Sequence record: NC_041878.1
Direction: 5' to 3' (one strand)
DNA length: 64,000 nucleotides
Position 1 is the first letter of the stretch; each line of letters opens with the position of its first letter. The notes beneath the pieces were generated by a model. It did no database searches. It worked only from the letters and a program-made list of their open reading frames with translations, and was not told where the DNA came from. This document shows, in pieces, positions 1,916-59,534 of the stretch. The translations under genes and the position numbers were made by a program.

Positions 1916-4900
1916 ATGTACGTAGATGGATATATGGATAGGAAAAAGACTGGTGAAGTTCTTCACGTAGCTGAACGTGTTAATGGTCAGCGTATACTGC
2001 GTGAAATTGAACCAGTATATGAGTACTATGTTGAATCTCCACGTGGTGAATACAAAACAATCAATGGAACATTAGCTGAGAAGTTTGAATTTACCCGTTT
2101 TTCAGAAATGAAAAAACAAATGGATGCATTGCCAAGTACTGCCAAGATCTATGAAGCAGATTGTAATGTAACCTTTAAAACATTAGCAAAACACTATATG
2201 GGGAAGCCATCTCCTGACCTCAATATTGTATTTTTCGATATTGAAACAGACTTTCACCCAAAATTTGGATATGCTCAACCAAGTGACCCTTTCAACCGTG
2301 TAACTGCAATTTCATTGTATCAAAGCTGGACAGGTAAAGACTATGTTCTTACTATGGCTCCTTCTGATATGGAAATTCATGAAGCACAAGACATTATTAA
2401 TCGTCTTAATGCTGAAACCAATGATCCAAACAGCGTAGTTATTCTATATACTGAAGAAACTGAAATGTTTCAGATGTTCTTTGAGCTAATTGAAGACGGT
2501 GATGTACTATCTGGATGGAACAGTGAATTCTTTGATATTCCATACATGGTTAATAGAACCAGAAAAATCTTTAACGAAGCAACGTTAGCTCGTTGGTGTC
2601 TATGGAATAAGAAACCAAATGCTCGTGAAGCAGATATGTTTGGTAAAACCATCGTAACCTATGATTTGGTCGGTCGTGTTCACTTAGACTATCTAGCATT
2701 GTACAAAAAACATGCTGGACAAGTTGAACAATCATATAAACTAGATTATATTGCTGAAAAAGTAACTGGTGAAAACAAAGTATCCTATGATGGTTCATTG
2801 GATAAATTGTATCGTGAAGATTATGAAACATTTCTACGATATTCTAAGCAGGATAGCATCCTACTAAAGAAAATCGATGAAAAAATGGACTTCATTAATC
2901 TACACAACCGACTAGCACATAAAGAATGTGTACTAATCAGTACTACTATGGGTTCTGTAGCACTAATCGACACTGCAATCATCAATCTTGCTCACCAGCG
3001 TGGGGAAGTCGTGTTCAATAAGCGTAAACTTGAAGAAGATGAAGTTGATTTCGAATATCAAGATTACGAAAGTGAATTTGATGATGAAGATGACGAAGAA
3101 ATGCAAGCTGGATCTAAAGCTGCTGGTGCATGGGTACAAGATCCAGTACTAGGATTGATTGATTTCTTAGGATGTGTTGACTTTAACTCACTATATCCTA
3201 CAGTTCTTCGTACATTAGGCATGAGTACTGAATGTATTCTAGGTCAATTACGTCAAACATATACTGATAAGTATTTGGCTGATAAAATTGAAGAACAACG
3301 TGTCAAATGGGCGAGAAATGGTGGTCGTGGTAAATTTGAACCTAAATGGACTGAAGCATGGCATGGTTTGTTCGCTAGTGTTGAATTCACGATGGTTCGT
3401 GAGAAATCACGAGATGTAATTACCGTTGATCTAGAAGATGGTACTACATTTGAGGCAACAGGTGCTGAATTATATGATATTATCTTCGGTGAAGATAGTA
3501 CTATTGTTCTAAGTGCGAACGGAACACTATTTGATAAGACTAAGTACGGTGTTATTCCAGAAATTCTTACAATGTGGTATTCTGAACGTAAAGCACAACA
3601 AAAAATGGTCATCGACTACAAACACTTGGCTACTGATGGTTGGGAAATTCCAGAAGAAGCAGTACAAGCAATCGAAAAAGAGTTACAATCTCTATCTTTC
3701 GGTACTGGAATTTATAAAACCAACTTACATGAAGATGATCCTATCTATCTAATGCGTTTAGCACTAGGTAAAAACGATTATACTGAAATGGCTAAGATTA
3801 TTGCATCTAATGGTATGCGTGTAGAAGATAATCACATCTTCGTTGCAGAAGCAGATAAGAAGTACTGTAAAACTCAATCTGCATTCTGGAAACAGAACCA
3901 ACAGATCCGTAAGATTCTTCTAAACTCACTATATGGTGCGTTGTTGAACAAAGGTTCACGTTTCTTTGATAAACGTCTAGGTCAATCAGTTACATTAACT
4001 GGCCGTAGTATGACTAAACACCTAGCAAGTAAGATTAATGAAGTTTGTACTGAAACTTACGATCATAGTGGTGGCGTAGTAGTATATGGTGATACTGACT
4101 CCGTATATTTCAGTGTTGCACACTACTATAAAGAGAATGACATTCCGTTTGAAATGTCAAAAGATGAAGTTGTTGAACTTTATCAAATGATTGGTGATAC
4201 TGTAGGTGCATCATTCCCTGAATTTATGGATACAACCTTTAACACTGGTATTGAAAAGGGTAAAATCGTTGGTGCGGATCTGGAAATGGTCGGTTCTCGT
4301 GGTCTATTCTTGAAGAAAAAGCGTTACGCTATTCTAAAATATTGGGAAGATGGGTTCCGTTTAGATGTGGATGGTAAACCCGGTAAGATCAAAGCTATGG
4401 GTCTTGAAATTAAACGCTCAGATACTCCAAAATACATCCAAAACTTCCTAGAAGAAACGTTGGTTGCATTACTAATTGGTGAAACTGAAGAAGAATTACG
4501 TGCTCGTGTACGTGCATTCAAGAAAGAGTTTAAAGATAAACCAAGTATTGAGAAAGGTTCACCAAAAACAGTTAAAAACTATACCAATAAGGAAAAAGAA
4601 TACCAAGATACAGGTAAATGTAGTGTAGGTCATGTACTTGCAGCTATACAATGGAACAAACTTCGTGATTTGAATGATGATAAATCAGTTCCAGAAGCTA
4701 CTGACGGTACTAAAGTGATTGTTTGTGACCTAAAACCTAATCCACTAGGTATTAAGAAAATTGGTTATCCAATTGACTGTGCTGATTATCTTCCAGAATG
4801 GTATCTAGAGCTTCCGTTCGATGATGATACAATGGAAAAAGCTGTACTAACCAAGAAATTAGGTAACATTTTCGGTATTCTAGATATGGATATTGGTATC

Positions 4901-4948
4901 GATGAGAAAAGTACCATTGAATTGAACACTGGTTTCTTCGAATGGTAA
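1916..4948 (+). CDS. gp43: DNA polymerase, family B (T4 gp43-like) with 3'-5' exonuclease domain
   Basis: Exo motifs FFDIETD, GWNSEFFD, YKLDYIA; polymerase motifs VDFNSLYP, KILLNSLYG, YGDTDS, KKRY. Confidence 0.97.
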   Translation: MYVDGYMDRKKTGEVLHVAERVNGQRILREIEPVYEYYVESPRGEYKTINGTLAEKFEFTRFSEMKKQMDALPSTAKIYEADCNVTFKTLAKHYMGKPSPDLNIVFFDIETDFHPKFGYAQPSDPFNRVTAISLYQSWTGKDYVLTMAPSDMEIHEAQDIINRLNAETNDPNSVVILYTEETEMFQMFFELIEDGDVLSGWNSEFFDIPYMVNRTRKIFNEATLARWCLWNKKPNAREADMFGKTIVTYDLVGRVHLDYLALYKKHAGQVEQSYKLDYIAEKVTGENKVSYDGSLDKLYREDYETFLRYSKQDSILLKKIDEKMDFINLHNRLAHKECVLISTTMGSVALIDTAIINLAHQRGEVVFNKRKLEEDEVDFEYQDYESEFDDEDDEEMQAGSKAAGAWVQDPVLGLIDFLGCVDFNSLYPTVLRTLGMSTECILGQLRQTYTDKYLADKIEEQRVKWARNGGRGKFEPKWTEAWHGLFASVEFTMVREKSRDVITVDLEDGTTFEATGAELYDIIFGEDSTIVLSANGTLFDKTKYGVIPEILTMWYSERKAQQKMVIDYKHLATDGWEIPEEAVQAIEKELQSLSFGTGIYKTNLHEDDPIYLMRLALGKNDYTEMAKIIASNGMRVEDNHIFVAEADKKYCKTQSAFWKQNQQIRKILLNSLYGALLNKGSRFFDKRLGQSVTLTGRSMTKHLASKINEVCTETYDHSGGVVVYGDTDSVYFSVAHYYKENDIPFEMSKDEVVELYQMIGDTVGASFPEFMDTTFNTGIEKGKIVGADLEMVGSRGLFLKKKRYAILKYWEDGFRLDVDGKPGKIKAMGLEIKRSDTPKYIQNFLEETLVALLIGETEEELRARVRAFKKEFKDKPSIEKGSPKTVKNYTNKEKEYQDTGKCSVGHVLAAIQWNKLRDLNDDKSVPEATDGTKVIVCDLKPNPLGIKKIGYPIDCADYLPEWYLELPFDDDTMEKAVLTKKLGNIFGILDMDIGIDEKSTIELNTGFFEW

Positions 4949-17775: not shown

Positions 17776-17806
17776 AAGGACGCTTATTGCGTCCTTTTTG
17801 TTTTTT
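17776..17806 (+). terminator. Intrinsic terminator
   Basis: AAGGACGC-ttatt-GCGTCCTT then T-rich. Confidence 0.75.
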
Positions 17807-17816
17807 AGAGAAAATT

Positions 17817-18662
17817 ATGACTGAGCTTGACAAATTTTTTAATAATGTTATGATATTGGACACTGAAACGACTGGCGTTGATGACGATTCAGACATTATT
17901 GAGTTTAGTGCTTCATTTCCATTAAGTGCAAATGATTCATTTGAAGATGTATACAATTATACCTCCAGATTTAAACCAACACATGATGTTCCCGCAGACG
18001 CATCAGCAATTCACTTCATTACAACCGATGATTTGGTAAACGAAGGTTCATATACTGATAAAGCTGAAGAATTCTATCCATTGTTTGGTGTTAAACAGTA
18101 CTATGTAGGACACAATGTGCAGTTTGACCGAAGAATGCTAAGAAAGAATAACGAACGTTTCTTTGGTAATGAAGTTCCTGAGTTTGAAAACGATGAAAGT
18201 TGGATTTGTACATTAAAACTAGCTAAAAAATTATTTGCAGAAGATCCAGAGTTCCAAAACTTAACTTTGAGCTATTTGTGGTTCAAATTTGAGTTGAATA
18301 AGACATGTACTCATAAAATTGTGCCTCATAGTGCAGAAGATGATGTGTATATGACTTATAAGGTACTTTCACATCTAGTAAATATTGCAATCGAACGAGG
18401 CTTGATTGACACCAATAAGGAAATTGGTTCACAAGTTGTGACATTAGCAAACACACCAATACTTTATAGCGTTATGACAATTGGTAAACATAAAGGTTGG
18501 GTAATGGAAGATGTTCCTGAAAATTATTTGAAATGGATGATTTCAAATATGGACGTTATGAATCCAGATATGCCTAACTTTGATGCTGACCTTGCCTTTA
18601 CGGTAGAAACTGAAATAACTCGTAGATTGGAAAATGGACTAATGTCATTCGACGTTGAATAA
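17817..18662 (+). CDS. DEDDh 3'-5' exonuclease (DnaQ/ExoX-like)
   Basis: LDTETTG, GHNVQFD, HSAEDD motifs; C-terminal GKHKG..DVP..YLKW module as in ExoX-like proteins. Confidence 0.88.
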   Translation: MTELDKFFNNVMILDTETTGVDDDSDIIEFSASFPLSANDSFEDVYNYTSRFKPTHDVPADASAIHFITTDDLVNEGSYTDKAEEFYPLFGVKQYYVGHNVQFDRRMLRKNNERFFGNEVPEFENDESWICTLKLAKKLFAEDPEFQNLTLSYLWFKFELNKTCTHKIVPHSAEDDVYMTYKVLSHLVNIAIERGLIDTNKEIGSQVVTLANTPILYSVMTIGKHKGWVMEDVPENYLKWMISNMDVMNPDMPNFDADLAFTVETEITRRLENGLMSFDVE

Positions 18663-20669: not shown

Positions 20670-21173
20670 ATGAACGTATTAACACCTGAAAATTATGCAT
20701 TTGAAATGGATCTAGTTACTGATACTATTCCAGAAGAAATGTACTGCGTACTTGACCTAAGCACGGTCGAAGATGCTGATTATTACTTTAAACACATCCT
20801 AAACACCGTGTCGTTTAATAGTATTAGTGCTGATTTACAAATTGGTAATCATATTGTTCAAGTTCCTCTCGGCTGGCAGATATTGCTTGGTGATGAAGAC
20901 ACTGGAATGATGGAAATGTGCACAATTGAGAATATTTTGAATATGAAAGACCCTAGAGCATTCGTTTATAATCCGATTCGCTCTATGTACCCTCGATATG
21001 AGCCTGTTAAAGTACTTCGAGTATTCACTCTAACTACTAAATGGCAAATTCCAATGTTACCAAAGAAAAATCTACTCGCAGTACCTTTATGTAACGGTAC
21101 AAATCCACCATGTGTGTACTTTGCAGATGAAAATGAGAAAATTCAAGATCTATTTTTAGGAATTGGTGATTAA
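20670..21173 (+). CDS. Hypothetical beta-rich protein
   Basis: 167 aa, AGGA RBS, in operon with the clamp-loader small subunit. Confidence 0.7.
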   Translation: MNVLTPENYAFEMDLVTDTIPEEMYCVLDLSTVEDADYYFKHILNTVSFNSISADLQIGNHIVQVPLGWQILLGDEDTGMMEMCTIENILNMKDPRAFVYNPIRSMYPRYEPVKVLRVFTLTTKWQIPMLPKKNLLAVPLCNGTNPPCVYFADENEKIQDLFLGIGD

Positions 21174-22018
21174 TGTTTGATTTTAACGGTTTACCAACAG
21201 CTTCAGAGGATGAAGAAACTAGTACAAGTACAGCAACCAAGTTAGATATGAATCTATTACTTGAAAAAATTGATATGGCTGACTATGACTATTACGACAC
21301 TCTAAGTGATAAAGAAAAGAAACATTTCCAACCGTATATTGTATTACGTTGGATTAGTTCTCTTGACGATTCAGTACAAGTAACATATACTGCAAAGAAA
21401 GTTGAAAACATCTTTGGTAAATGGTCAAGCGGTGGTAAAGATGCTCTTAATGAACTCAAAGATGAGTTTAATAGTACTGGTGCAGGGGTCTGCATCAGTG
21501 CCGCGAAGTACGAACATGCAAAGTACGATTGGCGTATTAAGTTTGCCGTACAAGACAGAGCAAGTGCAGATGCACTAATTGAAACCATGAAAGAATTTGG
21601 TATAACTGGACATGAAATCATTTCTCTCATTGATAGTACTACAATTAAGTACCATCTGATTATGCTAAATGATATGGTTAACCAGAACTTTTGGGAAATG
21701 AAAAACCATCCAGAGCTTGTGTATGAACTTATGTGTTCAGTATCAGAAATGATTGGACCACAGAAACGTGCACACAACTGGTTACCACATTGCAAAGGTT
21801 TGAAAAACGTCGATAAGAATATTTTCGACATTATAAAACGCACTCAATCTGAATATACTGCTGCTAATATGAATGAAGCAGAGTATAAGATTTTACTATC
21901 TGGTTATACGAAAGAAACCTTTGAAGATCTTCTTAAAGACTTAGGTTCATCTGAAACAGAAATTAAAACTCTTTTGAAACAATTCAAAGCAGAAAGTGAA
22001 AAGTATGGCAAAAACTAA
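21173..22018 (+). CDS. Probable clamp-loader small subunit (gp62-like) with insertion
   Basis: N-terminal ..YDTLSDKEKKHFQPYIVLRWISS and C-terminal LNDMVNQNFW..HPELVYELMC..KRAHNW resemble gp62-family proteins as recalled. Confidence 0.45.
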   Translation: MFDFNGLPTASEDEETSTSTATKLDMNLLLEKIDMADYDYYDTLSDKEKKHFQPYIVLRWISSLDDSVQVTYTAKKVENIFGKWSSGGKDALNELKDEFNSTGAGVCISAAKYEHAKYDWRIKFAVQDRASADALIETMKEFGITGHEIISLIDSTTIKYHLIMLNDMVNQNFWEMKNHPELVYELMCSVSEMIGPQKRAHNWLPHCKGLKNVDKNIFDIIKRTQSEYTAANMNEAEYKILLSGYTKETFEDLLKDLGSSETEIKTLLKQFKAESEKYGKN

Positions 22019-22724
22019 TAAAGGGGCTGCAAAAGCCCCTACTTATAAATGCAGATTTTGTGATAAAGAATATAAACGAGAAGATACAGTACTTACTCAT
22101 GCTTGTGTGAAACGTGATCGTTACAATGATCGTGAATCCCGACAAATGCGTGAGGCTTTTCGATTGTACATGCATTTCATGGAAGTTCACAAATTTCAAA
22201 TGAAAAAGAATGAAGAACCATTGATGCAGTTTATCAAGTCTAGATATTTTAATGACTTCTATGATTTTGCACAGTACATTTTATCACATGATATTCTAAA
22301 TAAAGAACAATTCATCACGTATGTTTTAACGAGTGGAAAGACTGTTTATGAATGGAAATCTCAAAAAACGTATGAGGAATGGGTAATTAAGTGCATTCGT
22401 AATGAACACCCTAGACGTGGTATTGAACGCTCAATTAATGCATTAGTTGAGTGGAGCGTAGCCACAGATAATGAATGGACAAGTTTCTTTGAAAATGTAA
22501 GTACTGAACGTGCTATTATGTGGTTCGAGACAGGTAAGATTTCTCCCTGGCTGATCTATGCGGCATCACCAGAAAGTGGAAACAAACTACTGAACCGTTT
22601 TTCTGACTCAGAGTTAGAATATCTGGTTCGTTTTATCGATCCAACATATTTCAAAATTCTCCAGATTCGTTATAATGATGAAGTGTTAGATATACGAAAT
22701 TTATTAACGGAGGCTGGTCTATGA
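22005..22724 (+). CDS. C2HC zinc-finger hypothetical protein
   Basis: YKCRFCDKEYKREDTVLTHAC; start moved to ATG 22005. Confidence 0.65.
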   Translation: MAKTNKGAAKAPTYKCRFCDKEYKREDTVLTHACVKRDRYNDRESRQMREAFRLYMHFMEVHKFQMKKNEEPLMQFIKSRYFNDFYDFAQYILSHDILNKEQFITYVLTSGKTVYEWKSQKTYEEWVIKCIRNEHPRRGIERSINALVEWSVATDNEWTSFFENVSTERAIMWFETGKISPWLIYAASPESGNKLLNRFSDSELEYLVRFIDPTYFKILQIRYNDEVLDIRNLLTEAGL

Positions 22725-23068
22725 TACATGGAATGTATTCAAACAATAATGATGACCAATTTGAACAAAAATCTGATGTACTGAAGAATGCAGCAGAATC
22801 AAAACTATCAATGATTCAACGTGGTTCAGTTACAGAGATTACGATGGGTGACAGAACTTTTCAAGTCACAGATCCTAAGCGTATGGAACAAACTATCTCA
22901 GTACTGAAGCATCAAGAAGAAGCTATTCAGAACTTGAGAGCAAGAATGAAAGAACATCATAATGCAATTAGTGTTTTGGTTCAAGAAATACAGACTTTAA
23001 AGAATGAAGTTCAAAGATTGAAGGAAATAACTAATGGATATGGATCACAAGAATTCTCAAACTATTAA
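22721..23068 (+). CDS. Coiled-coil hypothetical protein
   Basis: Heptad-like LKHQEEAIQNLRARMKEHHNAISVLVQEIQTLKNEVQRL; ATGA overlap. Confidence 0.65.
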   Translation: MIHGMYSNNNDDQFEQKSDVLKNAAESKLSMIQRGSVTEITMGDRTFQVTDPKRMEQTISVLKHQEEAIQNLRARMKEHHNAISVLVQEIQTLKNEVQRLKEITNGYGSQEFSNY

Positions 23069-23684
23069 TTATAGAAAAGCCAGAACTGATATTGATATTG
23101 ACTTTAAAGATGGAAAGTCAGTTATTGAGCAACTACCTTGTACCAGAAGTGTAGAAAGGATTACAGAGGATGGTTTGGTTCCTCATAATAGTGGTGTTCA
23201 TTTTGATAACATACCCGTAGACCCTATTAGCGGTTTAGCGAGCATTCAATACAAAGAAGCCGAAAGATTAGGATATCAAAAAGTTGATATTCTGTCTCAA
23301 TCGGCTTACGAACATGTGCGTGATAGGGATCACTTAAAAGAATTAATGAACAAAGAGCCTGATTGGGATCTATTATTAGTGCCTGAGTTCGTGGAAGAAT
23401 TATCACAAATTAAAAAGCATATAACCTTACTTAATGTGTGGCGTCCTCGTAGTATAGATGAACTGGCAATGTTTATTGCTATGATCCGTCCTGGGAAGCG
23501 TCAATGTCAGAGTATGAATAGTTGGGATGAGGTGAGGGCTGTTATTTGGGATTATGATAGTATTGGGCTAGACGCAGAGGGAAGAAAGTTAAGATACTTT
23601 AAAAAACCCCATGCTTATGCATATAGTTTAATGATTGTTGTTCAGTTGAACGCATTGGTAGAATATATTATTTCCTCTTCTTGA
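23034..23684 (+). CDS. DnaE (Pol III alpha)-like catalytic fragment, C-terminal half of a split minimal polymerase
   Basis: TDIDIDF (DnaE PDxDxDF), PHNSGVHF (HxxGVVI), LGYQKVDILS (GLxKxDxLG), AMIRPG (ALYRPG), FKKPHAYAYS (FNKSHAAAY). Confidence 0.8.
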   Translation: MDMDHKNSQTINYRKARTDIDIDFKDGKSVIEQLPCTRSVERITEDGLVPHNSGVHFDNIPVDPISGLASIQYKEAERLGYQKVDILSQSAYEHVRDRDHLKELMNKEPDWDLLLVPEFVEELSQIKKHITLLNVWRPRSIDELAMFIAMIRPGKRQCQSMNSWDEVRAVIWDYDSIGLDAEGRKLRYFKKPHAYAYSLMIVVQLNALVEYIISSS

Positions 23685-24021
23685 GAGCAACATTCCTGCG
23701 TTTAATACGTTTGGTCGGTAGATCACTTAACGAAATTACTGGCCCAGAGTGAACTTTCACTTGGTCAGTATTGAAGCGTTTTGTAAAAGGTTCAAATTTT
23801 TCCATTTCTTCTTGCATGAATAAGCAAATAGGAATGGTACGATTACTTTGCCACCACCAGTTATTAGCTAGTAGCAACAGTTCTTCTTGTAGGGATTCAT
23901 CCATCTCATGAAAACAGTACAATGTCATGTATTGTTTACTTTTGATTTTGATAATCCCATAATAGATAATCTCGTCGTGTTCTATGACTGTCACGAAAGG
24001 ATAAGTTTTGTATTCATTCAT
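23668..24021 (-). CDS. Hypothetical protein
   Basis: 117 aa; AGGA-type RBS and TATAAATA upstream on the minus strand; converges on the DnaE fragment. Confidence 0.65.
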   Translation of the reverse strand: MNEYKTYPFVTVIEHDEIIYYGIIKIKSKQYMTLYCFHEMDESLQEELLLLANNWWWQSNRTIPICLFMQEEMEKFEPFTKRFNTDQVKVHSGPVISLSDLPTKRIKRRNVALKKRK

Positions 24022-56708: not shown

Positions 56709-57014
56709 ATGTTCCATCCGTTTTTTGATCCTTCATCTTTAAGTAATCAAGAACTTCATGACAAAATCAATGAAGTTTCTATGCGTATTGCTTCTGCTAG
56801 AGCAGCAGGAATCCAATATGAAGTTATACAATCTATGTTTACTGTAATTCAATCTTGTGAAGAAGAATTACGTACTCGCCAAGCTAAAGTAGATTTGGAT
56901 GAAGTACAGAAAGAAAACAATCATTGTGTATTTGATTCAGATAGTTATATTAACACTTCAGATGAAAAGAAAAATGAAAGTACAAGGAAACAGAACTATA
57001 AGCGAGCATGGTGA
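56709..57014 (+). CDS. Hypothetical coiled-coil protein
   Basis: 101 aa, GGAGGA RBS. Confidence 0.65.
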   Translation: MFHPFFDPSSLSNQELHDKINEVSMRIASARAAGIQYEVIQSMFTVIQSCEEELRTRQAKVDLDEVQKENNHCVFDSDSYINTSDEKKNESTRKQNYKRAW

Positions 57015-57492
57015 TGTTCGCTTAGATTTAAACGCCGTGGTTTACGCAATAAACTGCGGTGCAGACATAAGATACATACAACTTAATGAACAAGATGAAG
57101 CTGAACGACTAAAGTTCAACGACAATTGTAAGAAATTCGGATTAGAAGAACGTATGTTGGATTATACAATCAATCATGACCAGAATCATGAGTTATGGCG
57201 TTATGATCCAGCATATGATAAAATTAATCTCGAAGACTATTTTCTTAACTTATGCAGTACAGATGAGCAACGCGAACGTGTACTATATGAGCTAAGTCTA
57301 TATGAAAGCTACAACATGACTAAACTACTACGTTGTATGATCTGGCTAGTAGACTACCTCGAAGAACATAATATTTTTTGGGGCTTAGGTCGTGGAAGTT
57401 CAGTAAGCAGCTATTGTTTATATTTGATTGGATTACATCTAGTAGATTCCATAAAATATGAACTAGATGTGAACGAATTTTTGAAATGGTAA
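56974..57492 (+). CDS. DnaE (Pol III alpha)-like fragment, N-terminal half of a split minimal polymerase
   Basis: ERVLYEL...DYLEEHNIFWGLGRGSSVSSYCLYLIGLHLVDSIKYELDVNEFLK matches DnaE RL..EL...GxGRGSxxGSLVAY.LGIT.VDP..Y.L.FERFL; start moved to ATG 56974. Confidence 0.8.
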   Translation: MKVQGNRTISEHGDVRLDLNAVVYAINCGADIRYIQLNEQDEAERLKFNDNCKKFGLEERMLDYTINHDQNHELWRYDPAYDKINLEDYFLNLCSTDEQRERVLYELSLYESYNMTKLLRCMIWLVDYLEEHNIFWGLGRGSSVSSYCLYLIGLHLVDSIKYELDVNEFLKW

Positions 57493-57510
57493 AAAAAATT
57501 ATGGTATAAT
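57482..57510 (+). promoter_or_regulatory. Putative middle-class promoter, variant TGAAAT box
   Basis: TGAAAT-17bp-TATAAT with TGG extension. Confidence 0.65.
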
Positions 57511-57538: not shown

Positions 57539-57913
57539 ATGAAGAAACACACTAGCTATCGCGGTCAGAAGATCGATATGGAGATGTTGAAGTTTCAGCA
57601 TCAACACAGCGTAGCAATTGGTAATGCCAATATGAATGCTCGCGGTGATATTATTGGTCGTGGCGGCACAGTTATCAAAAAGCGTGAAGACTTACTTGCT
57701 GAACGTGAACGTGAACTGCAAAAACCTGATATTAGTCCAGAACATCAGAGTCATTCTATGGCTCCACAGATGGGCGACCCAATGGATTTTGCGGATACTG
57801 GTTTTGATGATTCTCAGTTTGAAAGTACTCCAACCGGAGATACCATTGAGCCTGAGAAGAAAGCACCAGTTAAACGTGCTAAAGTAGCAAAAGACGACGC
57901 TGAACAAGAATAA
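57539..57913 (+). CDS. Hypothetical protein
   Basis: 124 aa; AIGNANMNARGDIIGRGG low-complexity core. Confidence 0.7.
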   Translation: MKKHTSYRGQKIDMEMLKFQHQHSVAIGNANMNARGDIIGRGGTVIKKREDLLAERERELQKPDISPEHQSHSMAPQMGDPMDFADTGFDDSQFESTPTGDTIEPEKKAPVKRAKVAKDDAEQE

Positions 57914-57923
57914 GGAAACAGAA

Positions 57924-58244
57924 ATGGAGTCAAAAGTACTTACAGCTTGTAAAGGTAAAGTTCTCGTATCTGATTTAGATATTGGTGAACAAAAATTAAA
58001 ATCAGGTATCGTTCTTCGCGATGATGACGGTACTGTGCGTGGTGTACATAGTCGTTGGGCTAAAGTATATTCCGTAGGTGAAGATATTACTGAACTCAAA
58101 GAAGGTGATTGGATTCTAATTGCTCATGGTAGATGGTCAAGAACAATTACTGTTGATGAAGTATCACTAAATTTAGTAGATTATCCTAAAGGCGTTCTTG
58201 CTTCAGCAGATGAACGACCAGACTTCTTAGGTCTAGGATATTAA
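57924..58244 (+). CDS. Divergent GroES-like co-chaperonin
   Basis: LTACKGKVLV...KSGIVL...AKVYSVG..ITELKEGDWILI fits the GroES beta-barrel. Confidence 0.72.
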   Translation: MESKVLTACKGKVLVSDLDIGEQKLKSGIVLRDDDGTVRGVHSRWAKVYSVGEDITELKEGDWILIAHGRWSRTITVDEVSLNLVDYPKGVLASADERPDFLGLGY

Positions 58245-58287
58245 AATACGCCCTGCATTGTCAGGGCTTTCTTTTTGTCGAGATTTT

Positions 58288-58578
58288 ATGAGTGTAACCG
58301 CCGATAACAAATTTAACTTTTATGATGTGCAATTAATTAGTACTAACAAAAGTGGTAAGTTTTACTTAGAAGTAGCTAAGAACAAATCTAAGGTGTACGA
58401 AGTAAACGAAGATCTTTTCAAAGCTATGCTGGTATCAGCAGCAACTGTGAAAAACATGGGTTTAGAAAATCCTAAAATGGCAAACACGTTTGATTACTTG
58501 TTTGACCAGATTGAAATGACAGAAGAAATCTTTACAGCTTTACTATATCCAGAATGGATTAATGAAAACAAGGAATGA
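58288..58578 (+). CDS. Hypothetical protein
   Basis: ATG 58288 with GAG RBS; overlaps the clamp-loader start. Confidence 0.6.
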   Translation: MSVTADNKFNFYDVQLISTNKSGKFYLEVAKNKSKVYEVNEDLFKAMLVSAATVKNMGLENPKMANTFDYLFDQIEMTEEIFTALLYPEWINENKE

Positions 58579-59534
58579 GCATGACCTCTCTATGGACTGA
58601 AAAATACCGCCCTGGTAATATCGAAGAATATGTGTTTAAAAACCCAGCTTTTAAACTAAAAATGGAAGAATGGATCAGAACTGGTCAGATTCCTCACATC
58701 GGTTTCTTCGGTCCAGCCGGAACAGGTAAAACTTCAGCGATTAAAGTCTTGATTAATGGCTTAGTCGAAAATGGATTTGTAGACCCATCTGATGTAACAA
58801 TTCTAAACATGTCCGATGAAGGTATGGATGCAGTACGTGAAAAGATCGATGCAGCAGCACGTCTTTCTGCATTCGGTGATTACCGTATCTTTGTACTGGA
58901 AGAAATGGAACAAATGGGGATCAAAGCACAGGGTTCTCTAAAACGTATTATGGAAGATTATCACGAGAATGCTCGTTTTATTCTAACGTCCAATGAACCA
59001 CACAAAATCCTAAAACCAATCATCTCTCGTGTTCAATCTATCATGATTGAAAAACACGATCAAGATGATTTCACCACCCGTATCATTGAAATCCTAATCA
59101 ATGAAGGTGTAGAACTAGATACTGAAGAAAGCTTAGATCTAGTTAACAAGTACATTAAATGTACTTTCCCTGATTTCCGCAAAACATTGAACACACTTCA
59201 GAGTTCAGTAGTTGATGGTAAACTAGTTAAACTAGAAGATTCGATTGATAGTACTGCAAGTTATCGTGCTGCAATTATCGATGCACTACAAGCAGGTAAT
59301 ATTCGTCAGATGCGTGAGCAAATTGTACAAAACATTCCAGAAGATGAAATCGATGGTTTCTTCTCATTCTTGTATCGTAATGTAGAAATGTTCACTACTG
59401 ATGAAATTAAAGAAATGAAGATCAAGGTTAAGATTCGTGATGCAGTTGTTAAACAAGCATCTGTTTCAGACCGTGAGATGAATCTATCCGCACTACTATG
59501 TGAAGTAGATTTGATCTGCAACGACCAAATGTAA
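58575..59534 (+). CDS. gp44: Clamp-loader AAA+ subunit (gp44/RFC-like)
   Basis: WTEKYRP, GPAGTGKT, LEEME, SRV, PDFRK..NTLQ. Confidence 0.93.
   Translation: MSMTSLWTEKYRPGNIEEYVFKNPAFKLKMEEWIRTGQIPHIGFFGPAGTGKTSAIKVLINGLVENGFVDPSDVTILNMSDEGMDAVREKIDAAARLSAFGDYRIFVLEEMEQMGIKAQGSLKRIMEDYHENARFILTSNEPHKILKPIISRVQSIMIEKHDQDDFTTRIIEILINEGVELDTEESLDLVNKYIKCTFPDFRKTLNTLQSSVVDGKLVKLEDSIDSTASYRAAIIDALQAGNIRQMREQIVQNIPEDEIDGFFSFLYRNVEMFTTDEIKEMKIKVKIRDAVVKQASVSDREMNLSALLCEVDLICNDQM

Follow-up and report, generated by a model that had tools for sequence, protein, structure and literature searches.

Is the short gene gp328 of Pectobacterium phage vB_PcaM_CBB (CBB), described in the genome paper as a 'truncated' DNA polymerase III (Pol III) alpha subunit (PMC5259590), a fragment, or is it one part of an enzyme whose other part is encoded elsewhere? 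CBB is a 378-kb Rak2-like jumbo myovirus (KU574722.1/NC_041878.1), of which we analysed a stretch of 64,000 nucleotides, here called the window; by megablast it is 100% identical to the record (record position = window position + 186000). A second gene, gp287, lies 33.9 kb upstream of gp328 on the same strand, and an initial annotation of the window had proposed that the two encode the halves of a split minimal DnaE-like polymerase. We tested this with sequence profiles, with AlphaFold models compared by VIA-align and Foldseek, and with PHROGs, all of which bear the proposal out: gp328 (the N-half) and gp287 (the C-half) probably pair up as the subunits of a single minimal nucleotidyltransferase of the C family (Pol III alpha-like). 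A split polymerase of this kind is already known. It was published in 2021 (PMC7824862, section 3.4.1) and is named 'DNA polymerase' in PHROGs v4 and RefSeq; RefSeq adds a note of PF07733 for gp328, and gives for gp287 a name that differs from the 'putative membrane protein' of the original GenBank record. Added here are the structural tiling of the two halves, the ratios of non-synonymous to synonymous substitution rates (dN/dS), two fused lineages, a contiguous cluster flanked by clamp-loader genes (RsoM2USA type) and the occurrence of the pair in a 141-kb non-jumbo phage.

Residues 96-171 of the N-half match positions 20-95 of the 260 in Pfam PF07733 (DNA_pol3_alpha; E 2.9e-8, 34.1 bits, cut-off 23.9), and searches of the PDB with phmmer and hmmsearch returned Pol III alpha chains only (E. 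coli residues 321-392, Taq 385-454). The protein matches PHROG 11127 'DNA polymerase' over its full length (1-171/171, E 1.7e-87). We also compared the N-half and the C-half with a full-length bacterial DnaE (L019) by hhalign, using 40-sequence family profiles; residues 74-172 of the N-half aligned to DnaE 283-406 with a probability of 96.6% (E 6.5e-10). The AlphaFold2 model has a predicted local distance difference test score (pLDDT) of 86.9, and its top 15 Foldseek matches in the PDB are all C-family polymerases, PolC among them. Residues 67-172 correspond to the first part of the palm and carry the invariant GxGRGSSVS nucleotide-binding (GS) motif, with R140-G141-S142 equivalent to R362-G363-S364 of E. 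coli in the PDB profile alignment. The chain ends in NEFLKW, two residues past FLK, at the position of FERFL in DnaE and before the catalytic DxD strand; bacterial DnaE runs on past that point (protein end, directly before the stop: GLGRGSSVSSYCLYLIGLHLVDSIKYELDVNEFLKW). The N-half does stop just before the catalytic motif, as initially noted. Its residues 1-66 (56974..57171) form a family-specific extension without counterpart in solved Pol III alpha: they are modelled as three short strands and two helices (pLDDT 78-91), and the structural alignments all begin at residue 66-73. The extension is kept across the N-half family and in one group of fused homologues (P0313, see below), is missing from another (P0372), and could be a partner-binding module.

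The C-half begins MDMDHKNSQTINYRKARTDIDIDF. Its first conserved element is the DxDxD strand, within TDIDIDF at residues 18-24, so that the initial claim of a PDxDxD motif opening this reading frame stands as far as conserved sequence goes; it does not hold for the start of the chain, which is a poorly modelled leader of 17 residues. Among homologues this leader varies between 0 and 18 residues and has low pLDDT. The catalytic strand (D19-x-D21-x-D23) is followed by HNSGV, a third aspartate (D85, in KxD), almost no thumb, and trimmed fingers with IRPGK and FKKxHAxAY, which align to ALYRPG and FNKSHSAAY of DnaE. D19, D21 and D85 match DIDIDF and KxDFLG of Mycobacterium tuberculosis (Mtb) DnaE1 and bacterial DnaE (D401, D403 and D555 in E. 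coli). As a single sequence the C-half gave only chance matches to the PDB and Pfam, plus the Pfam finger family PF17657 at E 0.22. With the family profile, the best seven PDB matches were all Pol III alpha, at marginal E values of 0.03-0.09, and the matched fragments are collinear on Mtb DnaE1 (DIDIDF at 413-424, KxDFLG to ALYRPG at 568-667, FxKSHAxxY at 765-787). Alignment to DnaE 547-645 by hhalign gave E 2.7e-4 over 86 columns, and the match to PHROG 11778 'DNA polymerase' E 2.2e-108. The AlphaFold2 model (pLDDT 90.3) found Pol III alpha in all of its top 9 Foldseek matches in the PDB. We base the assignment of the C-half on structure prediction and on the collinearity of the motifs.

The single-chain models were aligned to solved Pol III alpha structures. 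N-half residues 67-172 superpose on E. coli alpha 273-394, Taq 292-456 and Mtb DnaE1 303-414 (VIA-align Z 9.1-10.8), and the C-half, from residue 11 or 16 to 215, on E. coli alpha 399-784, Taq 456-841 and Mtb DnaE1 414-811 (Z 8.4-8.9). In these models, the palm and fingers of Pol III alpha are covered end to end by the N-half and the C-half, with neither overlap nor gap between them. The abutting coverage, together with an identical break point retained in hundreds of homologues, excludes a chance resemblance. According to the models the thumb is replaced by ∼ 25 residues, ∼ 100 residues of the fingers are deleted and nothing follows the position of E. coli residue ∼ 784; PHP, thumb, clamp-binding, OB and tau-binding parts were found in neither half. 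A tblastn search of the whole window with full DnaE matched the N-half only, so that the vicinity conceals no PHP, clamp-binding or OB piece. The phage pair is thus a relative of the C-family core and not a canonical DnaE/PolC.

Both chains are highly constrained. G137, G139, R140, G141, S142, S143, V144 and S146 of the N-half are invariant, GRGSS being present in 40 homologues, and in the 40-sequence family of the C-half the same is true of D19, D23, H51, K83, D85, R152, P153, K155, K190, H193 and Y197, with D21 in at least 90%. Comparison of CBB, GAP32 and Serratia phage BF gave dN/dS values of 0.024-0.043 for the N-half and 0.014-0.042 for the C-half, where dS is near saturation in the BF pairs and the CBB-GAP32 values are the most reliable. 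Among the comparison genes the range was 0.027-0.051 for the clamp loader, 0.03-0.09 for the primase and 0.20-0.30 for the overlapping open reading frame (ORF) at 22721. Both halves are under strong purifying selection, with dN/dS as low as that of the clamp loader and the primase. This bears on the idea, suggested by the word 'truncated' in the CBB genome paper (PMC5259590), that gp328 is an annotation or assembly artefact or part of a pseudogenised single gene. Some 95 phage records, and metagenomic clusters by the hundred, contain these two ORFs with an identical break point; with the selection on both ORFs, this leaves an artefact with practically no likelihood, and we consider that explanation already refuted.

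If the halves form one enzyme, phages should carry both. A tblastn search of 50,697 phage records found the N-half in 106 records and the C-half in 96; the surplus of N-halves comes from Clostridium phages and faecal contigs with ordinary DnaE/PolC genes. With divergent queries from Stenotrophomonas phage RAS14 and local hidden Markov model (HMM) searches of fetched loci, both halves were seen in each complete phage record that was individually checked; no phage with one half only, which the initial annotation had named as a finding that would speak against it, was encountered among these. The only one-sided cases were a partial record and Salicola phage SCTP-2. The distance between the halves is 31-34 kb in the Rak2-like group, 43.6 kb in the PA5oct group, 30 kb in Vibrio phage 2.275.O, 182 kb in Atu_ph07 and 224 kb in Phosso; it falls to 14-15 kb in XacN1, Xoo-sp13 and CM1/RAS14, to 10.8 kb in Alishewanella phage Slickus01 (141-kb genome, not jumbo) and to 4.2 kb in RsoM2USA. 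Such separation, 34 kb in CBB and far more in Phosso, and the fact that each half has its own start, stop and neighbours, might suggest that the proteins act separately, as decoys or modulators of the host Pol III or the phage replisome, or that one is a decaying remnant. We give this little credence in view of the strict co-occurrence across the checked lineages, the invariant catalytic residues of both halves with their dN/dS of 0.01-0.04, the incomplete fold that each half represents and the two independent natural fusions described below. In Escherichia phage CMSTMSU (MH494197.1; 229451-229962 and 260196-260819) the halves match in two to three pieces, where all relatives have single pieces; these are probably frameshift sequencing errors and not a real disruption.

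The initial annotation had suggested a survey of relatives for fused versions, and two independent fused lineages were found in metagenomes. Searched with a profile, a set of 1.84 billion representative proteins yielded 601 matches, and the best 150, which we inspected, were all stand-alone proteins of ∼ 180-230 aa or fragments, with the exception of two. P0313 (375 aa) consists of a full N-half (HMM positions 3-170, E 2e-51), a 9-residue linker and a full C-half (E 2.8e-55). Two further versions, P0391 and P0392, extend this group to three samples (375-376 aa); since they share 78-81% identity and come from other samples, P0313 cannot be an assembly chimera. The other fusion, P0372 (336 aa), is very unlike this group and its N part is short. 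Both are joined at the break point in N-to-C order, and their PF07733 match crosses the junction to profile positions 121 (P0313) and 112 (P0372), where that of the split N-half stops at 95. Of the indirect evidence for a single enzyme made of both halves, these fusions, which follow DnaE in order and in the place of the junction, are the strongest. In a tree of C-halves the two fused groups fall in two different supported clades of stand-alone proteins (Shimodaira-Hasegawa-like approximate likelihood ratio test 95-97), and this unrooted tree implies at least two changes between the split and the fused state, whatever the root. In the split relatives nearest to P0313, a C2H2-zinc-finger-like gene and the C-half are arranged as usual, and the fused genes retain the convergent gp288-like neighbour. 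The fused forms look like secondary re-fusions rather than ancestors.

The gene for P0372 and its neighbour lie at L007:1516-4181 (JGI 3300080032 Ga0669126_0033275, 8 kb, GC content 59%). Directly upstream of the fused gene, and overlapping it, this neighbour codes for a 552-aa protein with a PF03090 Replicase (replicase/primase-type) domain and a helix-turn-helix motif; the contig is possibly a small plasmid or phage with the minimal enzyme as its sole polymerase. Scans of IMG/VR gave no longer contigs with fused genes. From a scan of a single metagenome came an ordinary split locus (L018) and two loci that match the junction-spanning region; of these two, L019 was opened and proved to be the bacterial full-length DnaE. 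The metagenomic protein P0382 (233 aa) joins an N-terminal fragment of the C-half (residues 1-111) to an unrelated C-terminal part with the motif GRRHQLRKHL, which we take to resemble pseudouridine synthases. Rather than a real architecture, P0382 is probably the product of a chimeric or frameshifted gene call.

DnaE is the classic natural host of split inteins, and the two phage products might likewise be joined covalently, by protein trans-splicing or at the RNA level. The junctions speak so clearly against this that we rate it as extremely improbable. Neither carries intein halves, as the initial annotation had held, or other extra sequence, and no Hint/intein Pfam match was obtained; intein halves of ∼ 100 aa and ∼ 35 aa would not fit between an N-half that stops two residues past FLK and a C-half with a short leader of variable length, and the break site differs from the cyanobacterial one. 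Instead, the halves would associate non-covalently after separate translation, with no intein or other joining device. The support for such an assembly is indirect and comes from the co-occurrence, the complementary folds and the natural fusions.

In the two-subunit enzyme that we propose, the N-half would contribute the first palm segment, with the GRGS loop holding the triphosphate of the incoming deoxynucleotide. From the C-half would come the beta-strands that bear the three aspartates for metal binding (D19, D21 and D85), and trimmed fingers that hold the template and the nucleotide. Neither half is expected to be active alone, because the break interrupts the Pol-beta-like catalytic fold and separates the two motifs that are its hallmarks. 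The window also codes for a T4 gp43-like family B DNA polymerase with an exonuclease domain (listed for CBB in Table 3 of PMC5259590), presumed to be the main replicase, and for a gp32-like single-stranded DNA-binding protein (SSB), UvsX, UvsW helicase, primase and a DnaB-like helicase. Since a family B replicase is co-encoded, the split enzyme would be a second polymerase in a T4-like replisome set. An auxiliary role in the replisome, for example in primer extension, one-strand synthesis or repair, is most likely for an enzyme that lacks PHP, thumb, clamp-binding, OB and tau-binding parts and stands beside a T4-type family B polymerase. The replication module of the C-half also includes the gene for a DnaQ-like 3'-5' exonuclease, noted for CBB in PMC5259590. 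This gene is flanked by those for UvsX and UvsW and lies ∼ 4.4 kb upstream of the C-half; its product might be a partner and proofreader of the exonuclease-less split polymerase. The clamp loader, whose genes flank both halves in the putative ancestral order, may be a further partner. In PA5oct, a gene of 257 aa is annotated 'DNA polymerase III' (L009:38586-39359).

The pair could instead rebuild a Pol-beta-fold nucleotidyltransferase for template-independent tailing, priming, translesion-type fill-in or nucleotide-signal synthesis, and not for templated replication. The extreme trimming (no thumb, short fingers, no clamp-binding or proofreading domain) would fit such a job, as would the complete family B replicase that the phage already has. 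However, IRPGK and FKKxHAxAY, the finger motifs common to replicative DnaE, are retained, the genes lie among those for SSB, UvsX, the DnaQ-like exonuclease, UvsW, primase, helicase and clamp loader, and one fused relative adjoins the PF03090 gene; we therefore regard a non-replicative function as unlikely, though worth keeping in mind.

Several points weigh against a split replicative polymerase. With the thumb and most of the DNA- and clamp-binding parts gone, processive templated synthesis is not assured. The sequence evidence for the C-half, taken by itself, is marginal. One C-half homologue, P0084 (183 aa), reads PDIVIDF with Val at the position of D21, which reflects an error in sequencing or else a variant that is inactive by nature. 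In SCTP-2 the ± 25 kb around the N-half gave no C-half, whose presence in that genome is deduced from organism tallies only. Our literature searches yielded no biochemical or interaction study of the split polymerase; as to transcript timing, the main text of the PA5oct omics paper makes no gene-specific statement.

The surroundings of the two halves (Table 1) suggest how they came to be so far apart. Conserved block A comprises a gp283-like gene, a gp62-like candidate for the clamp-loader small subunit, the C2H2-zinc-finger-like ORF, the C-half and convergent gp288; block B comprises the N-half, the ORF at 57539, a GroES-like gene, the gp44/RFC-like clamp-loader gene and a HAD phosphatase gene. 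A gp44-like clamp loader near the N-half had been part of the initial annotation and is confirmed by Pfam (DNA_pol3_delta2 E 3.7e-11, AAA E 6.4e-11, Gp44_lid E 7e-5) and PHROG 168 (E 1.4e-75). All lineages examined have the C2H2 ORF in the interval from the gp62-like gene to the C-half (homologues in L003, L004, L009, L011, L012 and L017), phmmer found gp288 homologues in L004, L009, L011, L012, L013, L006 and L017, and homologues of ORF 57539 follow the N-half in PA5oct, SCTP-2, Vibrio phage 2.275.O and Atu_ph07. In every lineage examined, the GroES/gp31-like gene stands between the N-half and the gp44-like gene (homologues at L004:9562-9876, L009:47882-48208, L010:25596-25910, L011:42309-42650 and L016:6085-6420; the RsoM2USA homologue matches Pfam Cpn10 at E 1.4e-4).

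Table 1. Positions in the window of the two polymerase halves and of genes discussed with them.
Feature	Position	Strand	Remarks
N-half of the proposed split minimal Pol III alpha	56974..57492	+	gp328 (FDG95_gp328), 172 aa, exact RefSeq coding sequence
C-half of the proposed split minimal Pol III alpha	23034..23684	+	gp287, 216 aa
T4 gp43-like family B DNA polymerase with exonuclease domain	1916..4948	+	DNA_pol_B E 5.8e-22, DNA_pol_B_exo1 E 2.3e-20
DnaQ-like 3'-5' exonuclease	17787..18662	+	CBB_280; Pfam RNase_T E 7.6e-22
Candidate gp62-like clamp-loader small subunit	21173..22018	+	gp284, 281 aa
C2H2-zinc-finger-like ORF	21996..22724	+	gp285, annotated start 22005; weak C2H2 Pfam matches
Small coiled-coil ORF	22721..23068	+	gp286, annotated virion structural
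Convergent conserved ORF at the 3' end of the C-half	23668..24021	-	gp288
Conserved block B ORF directly after the N-half	57539..57913	+	
GroES/gp31-like co-chaperonin	57924..58244	+	RefSeq 'head morphogenesis'
gp44/RFC-like AAA+ clamp-loader large subunit	58575..59534	+	gp332, annotated start 58581

RsoM2USA has the order N-half, GroES-like gene, one ORF of 400 aa, gp44-like gene, gp62-like candidate, C2H2 ORF and C-half within 5.3 kb on one strand, and the order in RAS14 and Slickus01 is similar. The blocks are apart in CBB, GAP32, BF, Vibrio phage 2.275.O, PA5oct and Atu_ph07 (30-182 kb), and in each case it is the gp44-like and the gp62-like gene that the cut separates: in the flanks examined the N-half stays with the former and the C-half with the gp62-like and C2H2 genes. 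By analogy with T4, where gene 62 comes directly after gene 44, the contiguous cluster is likelier to be the ancestral state. This synteny supports the initial proposal that an ancestral cluster was broken apart. As to direction, the sequences allow both a fission and a gene that was split ancestrally; the divergence from DnaE is too great for rooting.

The gp62-like assignment of the ORF at 21173, likewise made initially, fares less evenly. Position argues for it: homologues lie directly 3' of the gp44-like gene in RsoM2USA, RAS14 and Slickus01, and beside the C-half in PA5oct, Vibrio phage 2.275.O and Atu_ph07. The CBB candidate itself, 36 kb from the gp44-like gene, is not directly downstream of it. 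An ESM-Atlas feature lead points to PF16790 Phage_clamp_A (score 0.81-0.84). From sequence there is little to add, as neither the protein nor three homologues gave a Pfam match, searches gave no PDB match to T4 gp62 and no PHROG function, and hhalign to T4 gp62 was weak (probability 10%, E 0.0031 over 54 columns). We lean towards a gp62-like protein, mostly on position. The CBB protein has an insert of ∼ 90 residues (∼ 63-160) that is missing from the homologues of 142-157 aa in RAS14, RsoM2USA and Slickus01. Its best PDB match, triose-phosphate isomerase (E 0.009), lies inside this CBB-specific insert and was judged to be due to chance.

That each half travels with one clamp-loader gene allows a bolder model, in which the split is more than a neutral gene fission: the polymerase would be built around the clamp loader, each half being delivered by one of its subunits, and the active site would form only at a loaded primer end. 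A clamp-loader cassette inserted into a single gene could then have produced the original split. We consider this decidedly unlikely; if true, family-B phages would have a clamp-loader-gated second polymerase for primer extension or hand-off.

Both polymerase genes overlap the 3' end of the preceding ORF, the C-half by 35 nt (ORF 22721..23068) and the N-half by 41 nt (ORF 56709..57014). A clear AAGGA Shine-Dalgarno sequence lies 5' of the C-half ATG; the only counterpart upstream of the N-half is a purine-rich GAAAAGAAAA stretch. For the N-half we took the start at 56974 (MKVQGNR...), in line with homologues and annotation; the longest ORF begins at 56899, and an additional in-frame ATG is present at 56962. 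The stop codon of the N-half coincides with a strong match to a sigma-70-like promoter (57481..57510; TTGAAA-18-TATAAT with TG, 11/12). A bidirectional GC-rich hairpin at 58250..58267, between the GroES-like gene and ORF 58258, is a terminator candidate, and terminator-like sites are enriched around this stretch (6 observed, 1.7 expected).

A DNA-polymerase active site that is divided between two polypeptides inside the catalytic fold is unusual. The pair provides a natural minimal model of the C-family core, with 388 residues in two chains and 336-376 in the fused forms, and the fused homologues and the compact clamp-loader-flanked cluster offer simple experimental handles. If the prediction is correct, it bears on the evolution of bacterial replicases and on the question of why family-B phages keep a second polymerase.

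Among known systems, the split Pol III alpha described by Iyer, Anantharaman, Krishnan, Burroughs and Aravind for 'group 2.2' jumbo phages (Viruses 13:63, 2021; PMC7824862) is, as presented in section 3.4.1 of that paper, the same thing as gp328 and gp287, with no difference in kind. That section describes a phage-specific minimal Pol III alpha made of an N-terminal NTP-binding and a C-terminal Mg2+/template-binding protein, whose genes are 'distantly located' and accompany a family B polymerase; the form is treated there as ancestral-like, and the same range of jobs (primer extension, one-strand synthesis, repair) is proposed. With a stand-alone N protein, a distant C protein, a family B polymerase and a T4-like replisome, the CBB pair fits this group. 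With bacterial DnaE/PolC (PDB 2HNH, 2HPI, 3E0D, 5LEW and 3F2B) it shares the Pol-beta-like palm with the GS motif, DxD and third Asp, the fingers motifs RPG and KSHAxAY, and the collinear order of these elements. In contrast to these enzymes of ∼ 1160 aa, the phage form consists of two polypeptides of 388 aa in total, has no PHP, beta-clamp motif, OB fold or tau-binding tail, and possesses the extra 66-aa N-terminal extension.

Two genes far apart also encode DnaE in cyanobacteria; there the break has an intein half on either side, and splicing turns the products into a single polypeptide. The phage pair resembles this arrangement in that a C-family catalytic subunit comes from two distant genes, but it has no intein halves and its break lies inside the catalytic palm, where that of the cyanobacterial protein lies elsewhere. 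The phiKZ-like jumbo-phage RNA polymerases, with their split beta and beta' subunits, share the principle of a core polymerase made of several non-covalently assembled polypeptides (PMC7824862, PMC7598289). They belong to an unrelated family and their complexes have been purified and solved, whereas the split DNA polymerase is known from genes and predictions alone. Finally, a gp44-like AAA+ gene followed by a gene for a small helical protein, as in RsoM2USA, RAS14 and Slickus01, is reminiscent of the gene 44-gene 62 operon of T4; CBB differs from that operon in that the two genes lie 34 kb apart, each travelling with one half of the polymerase.

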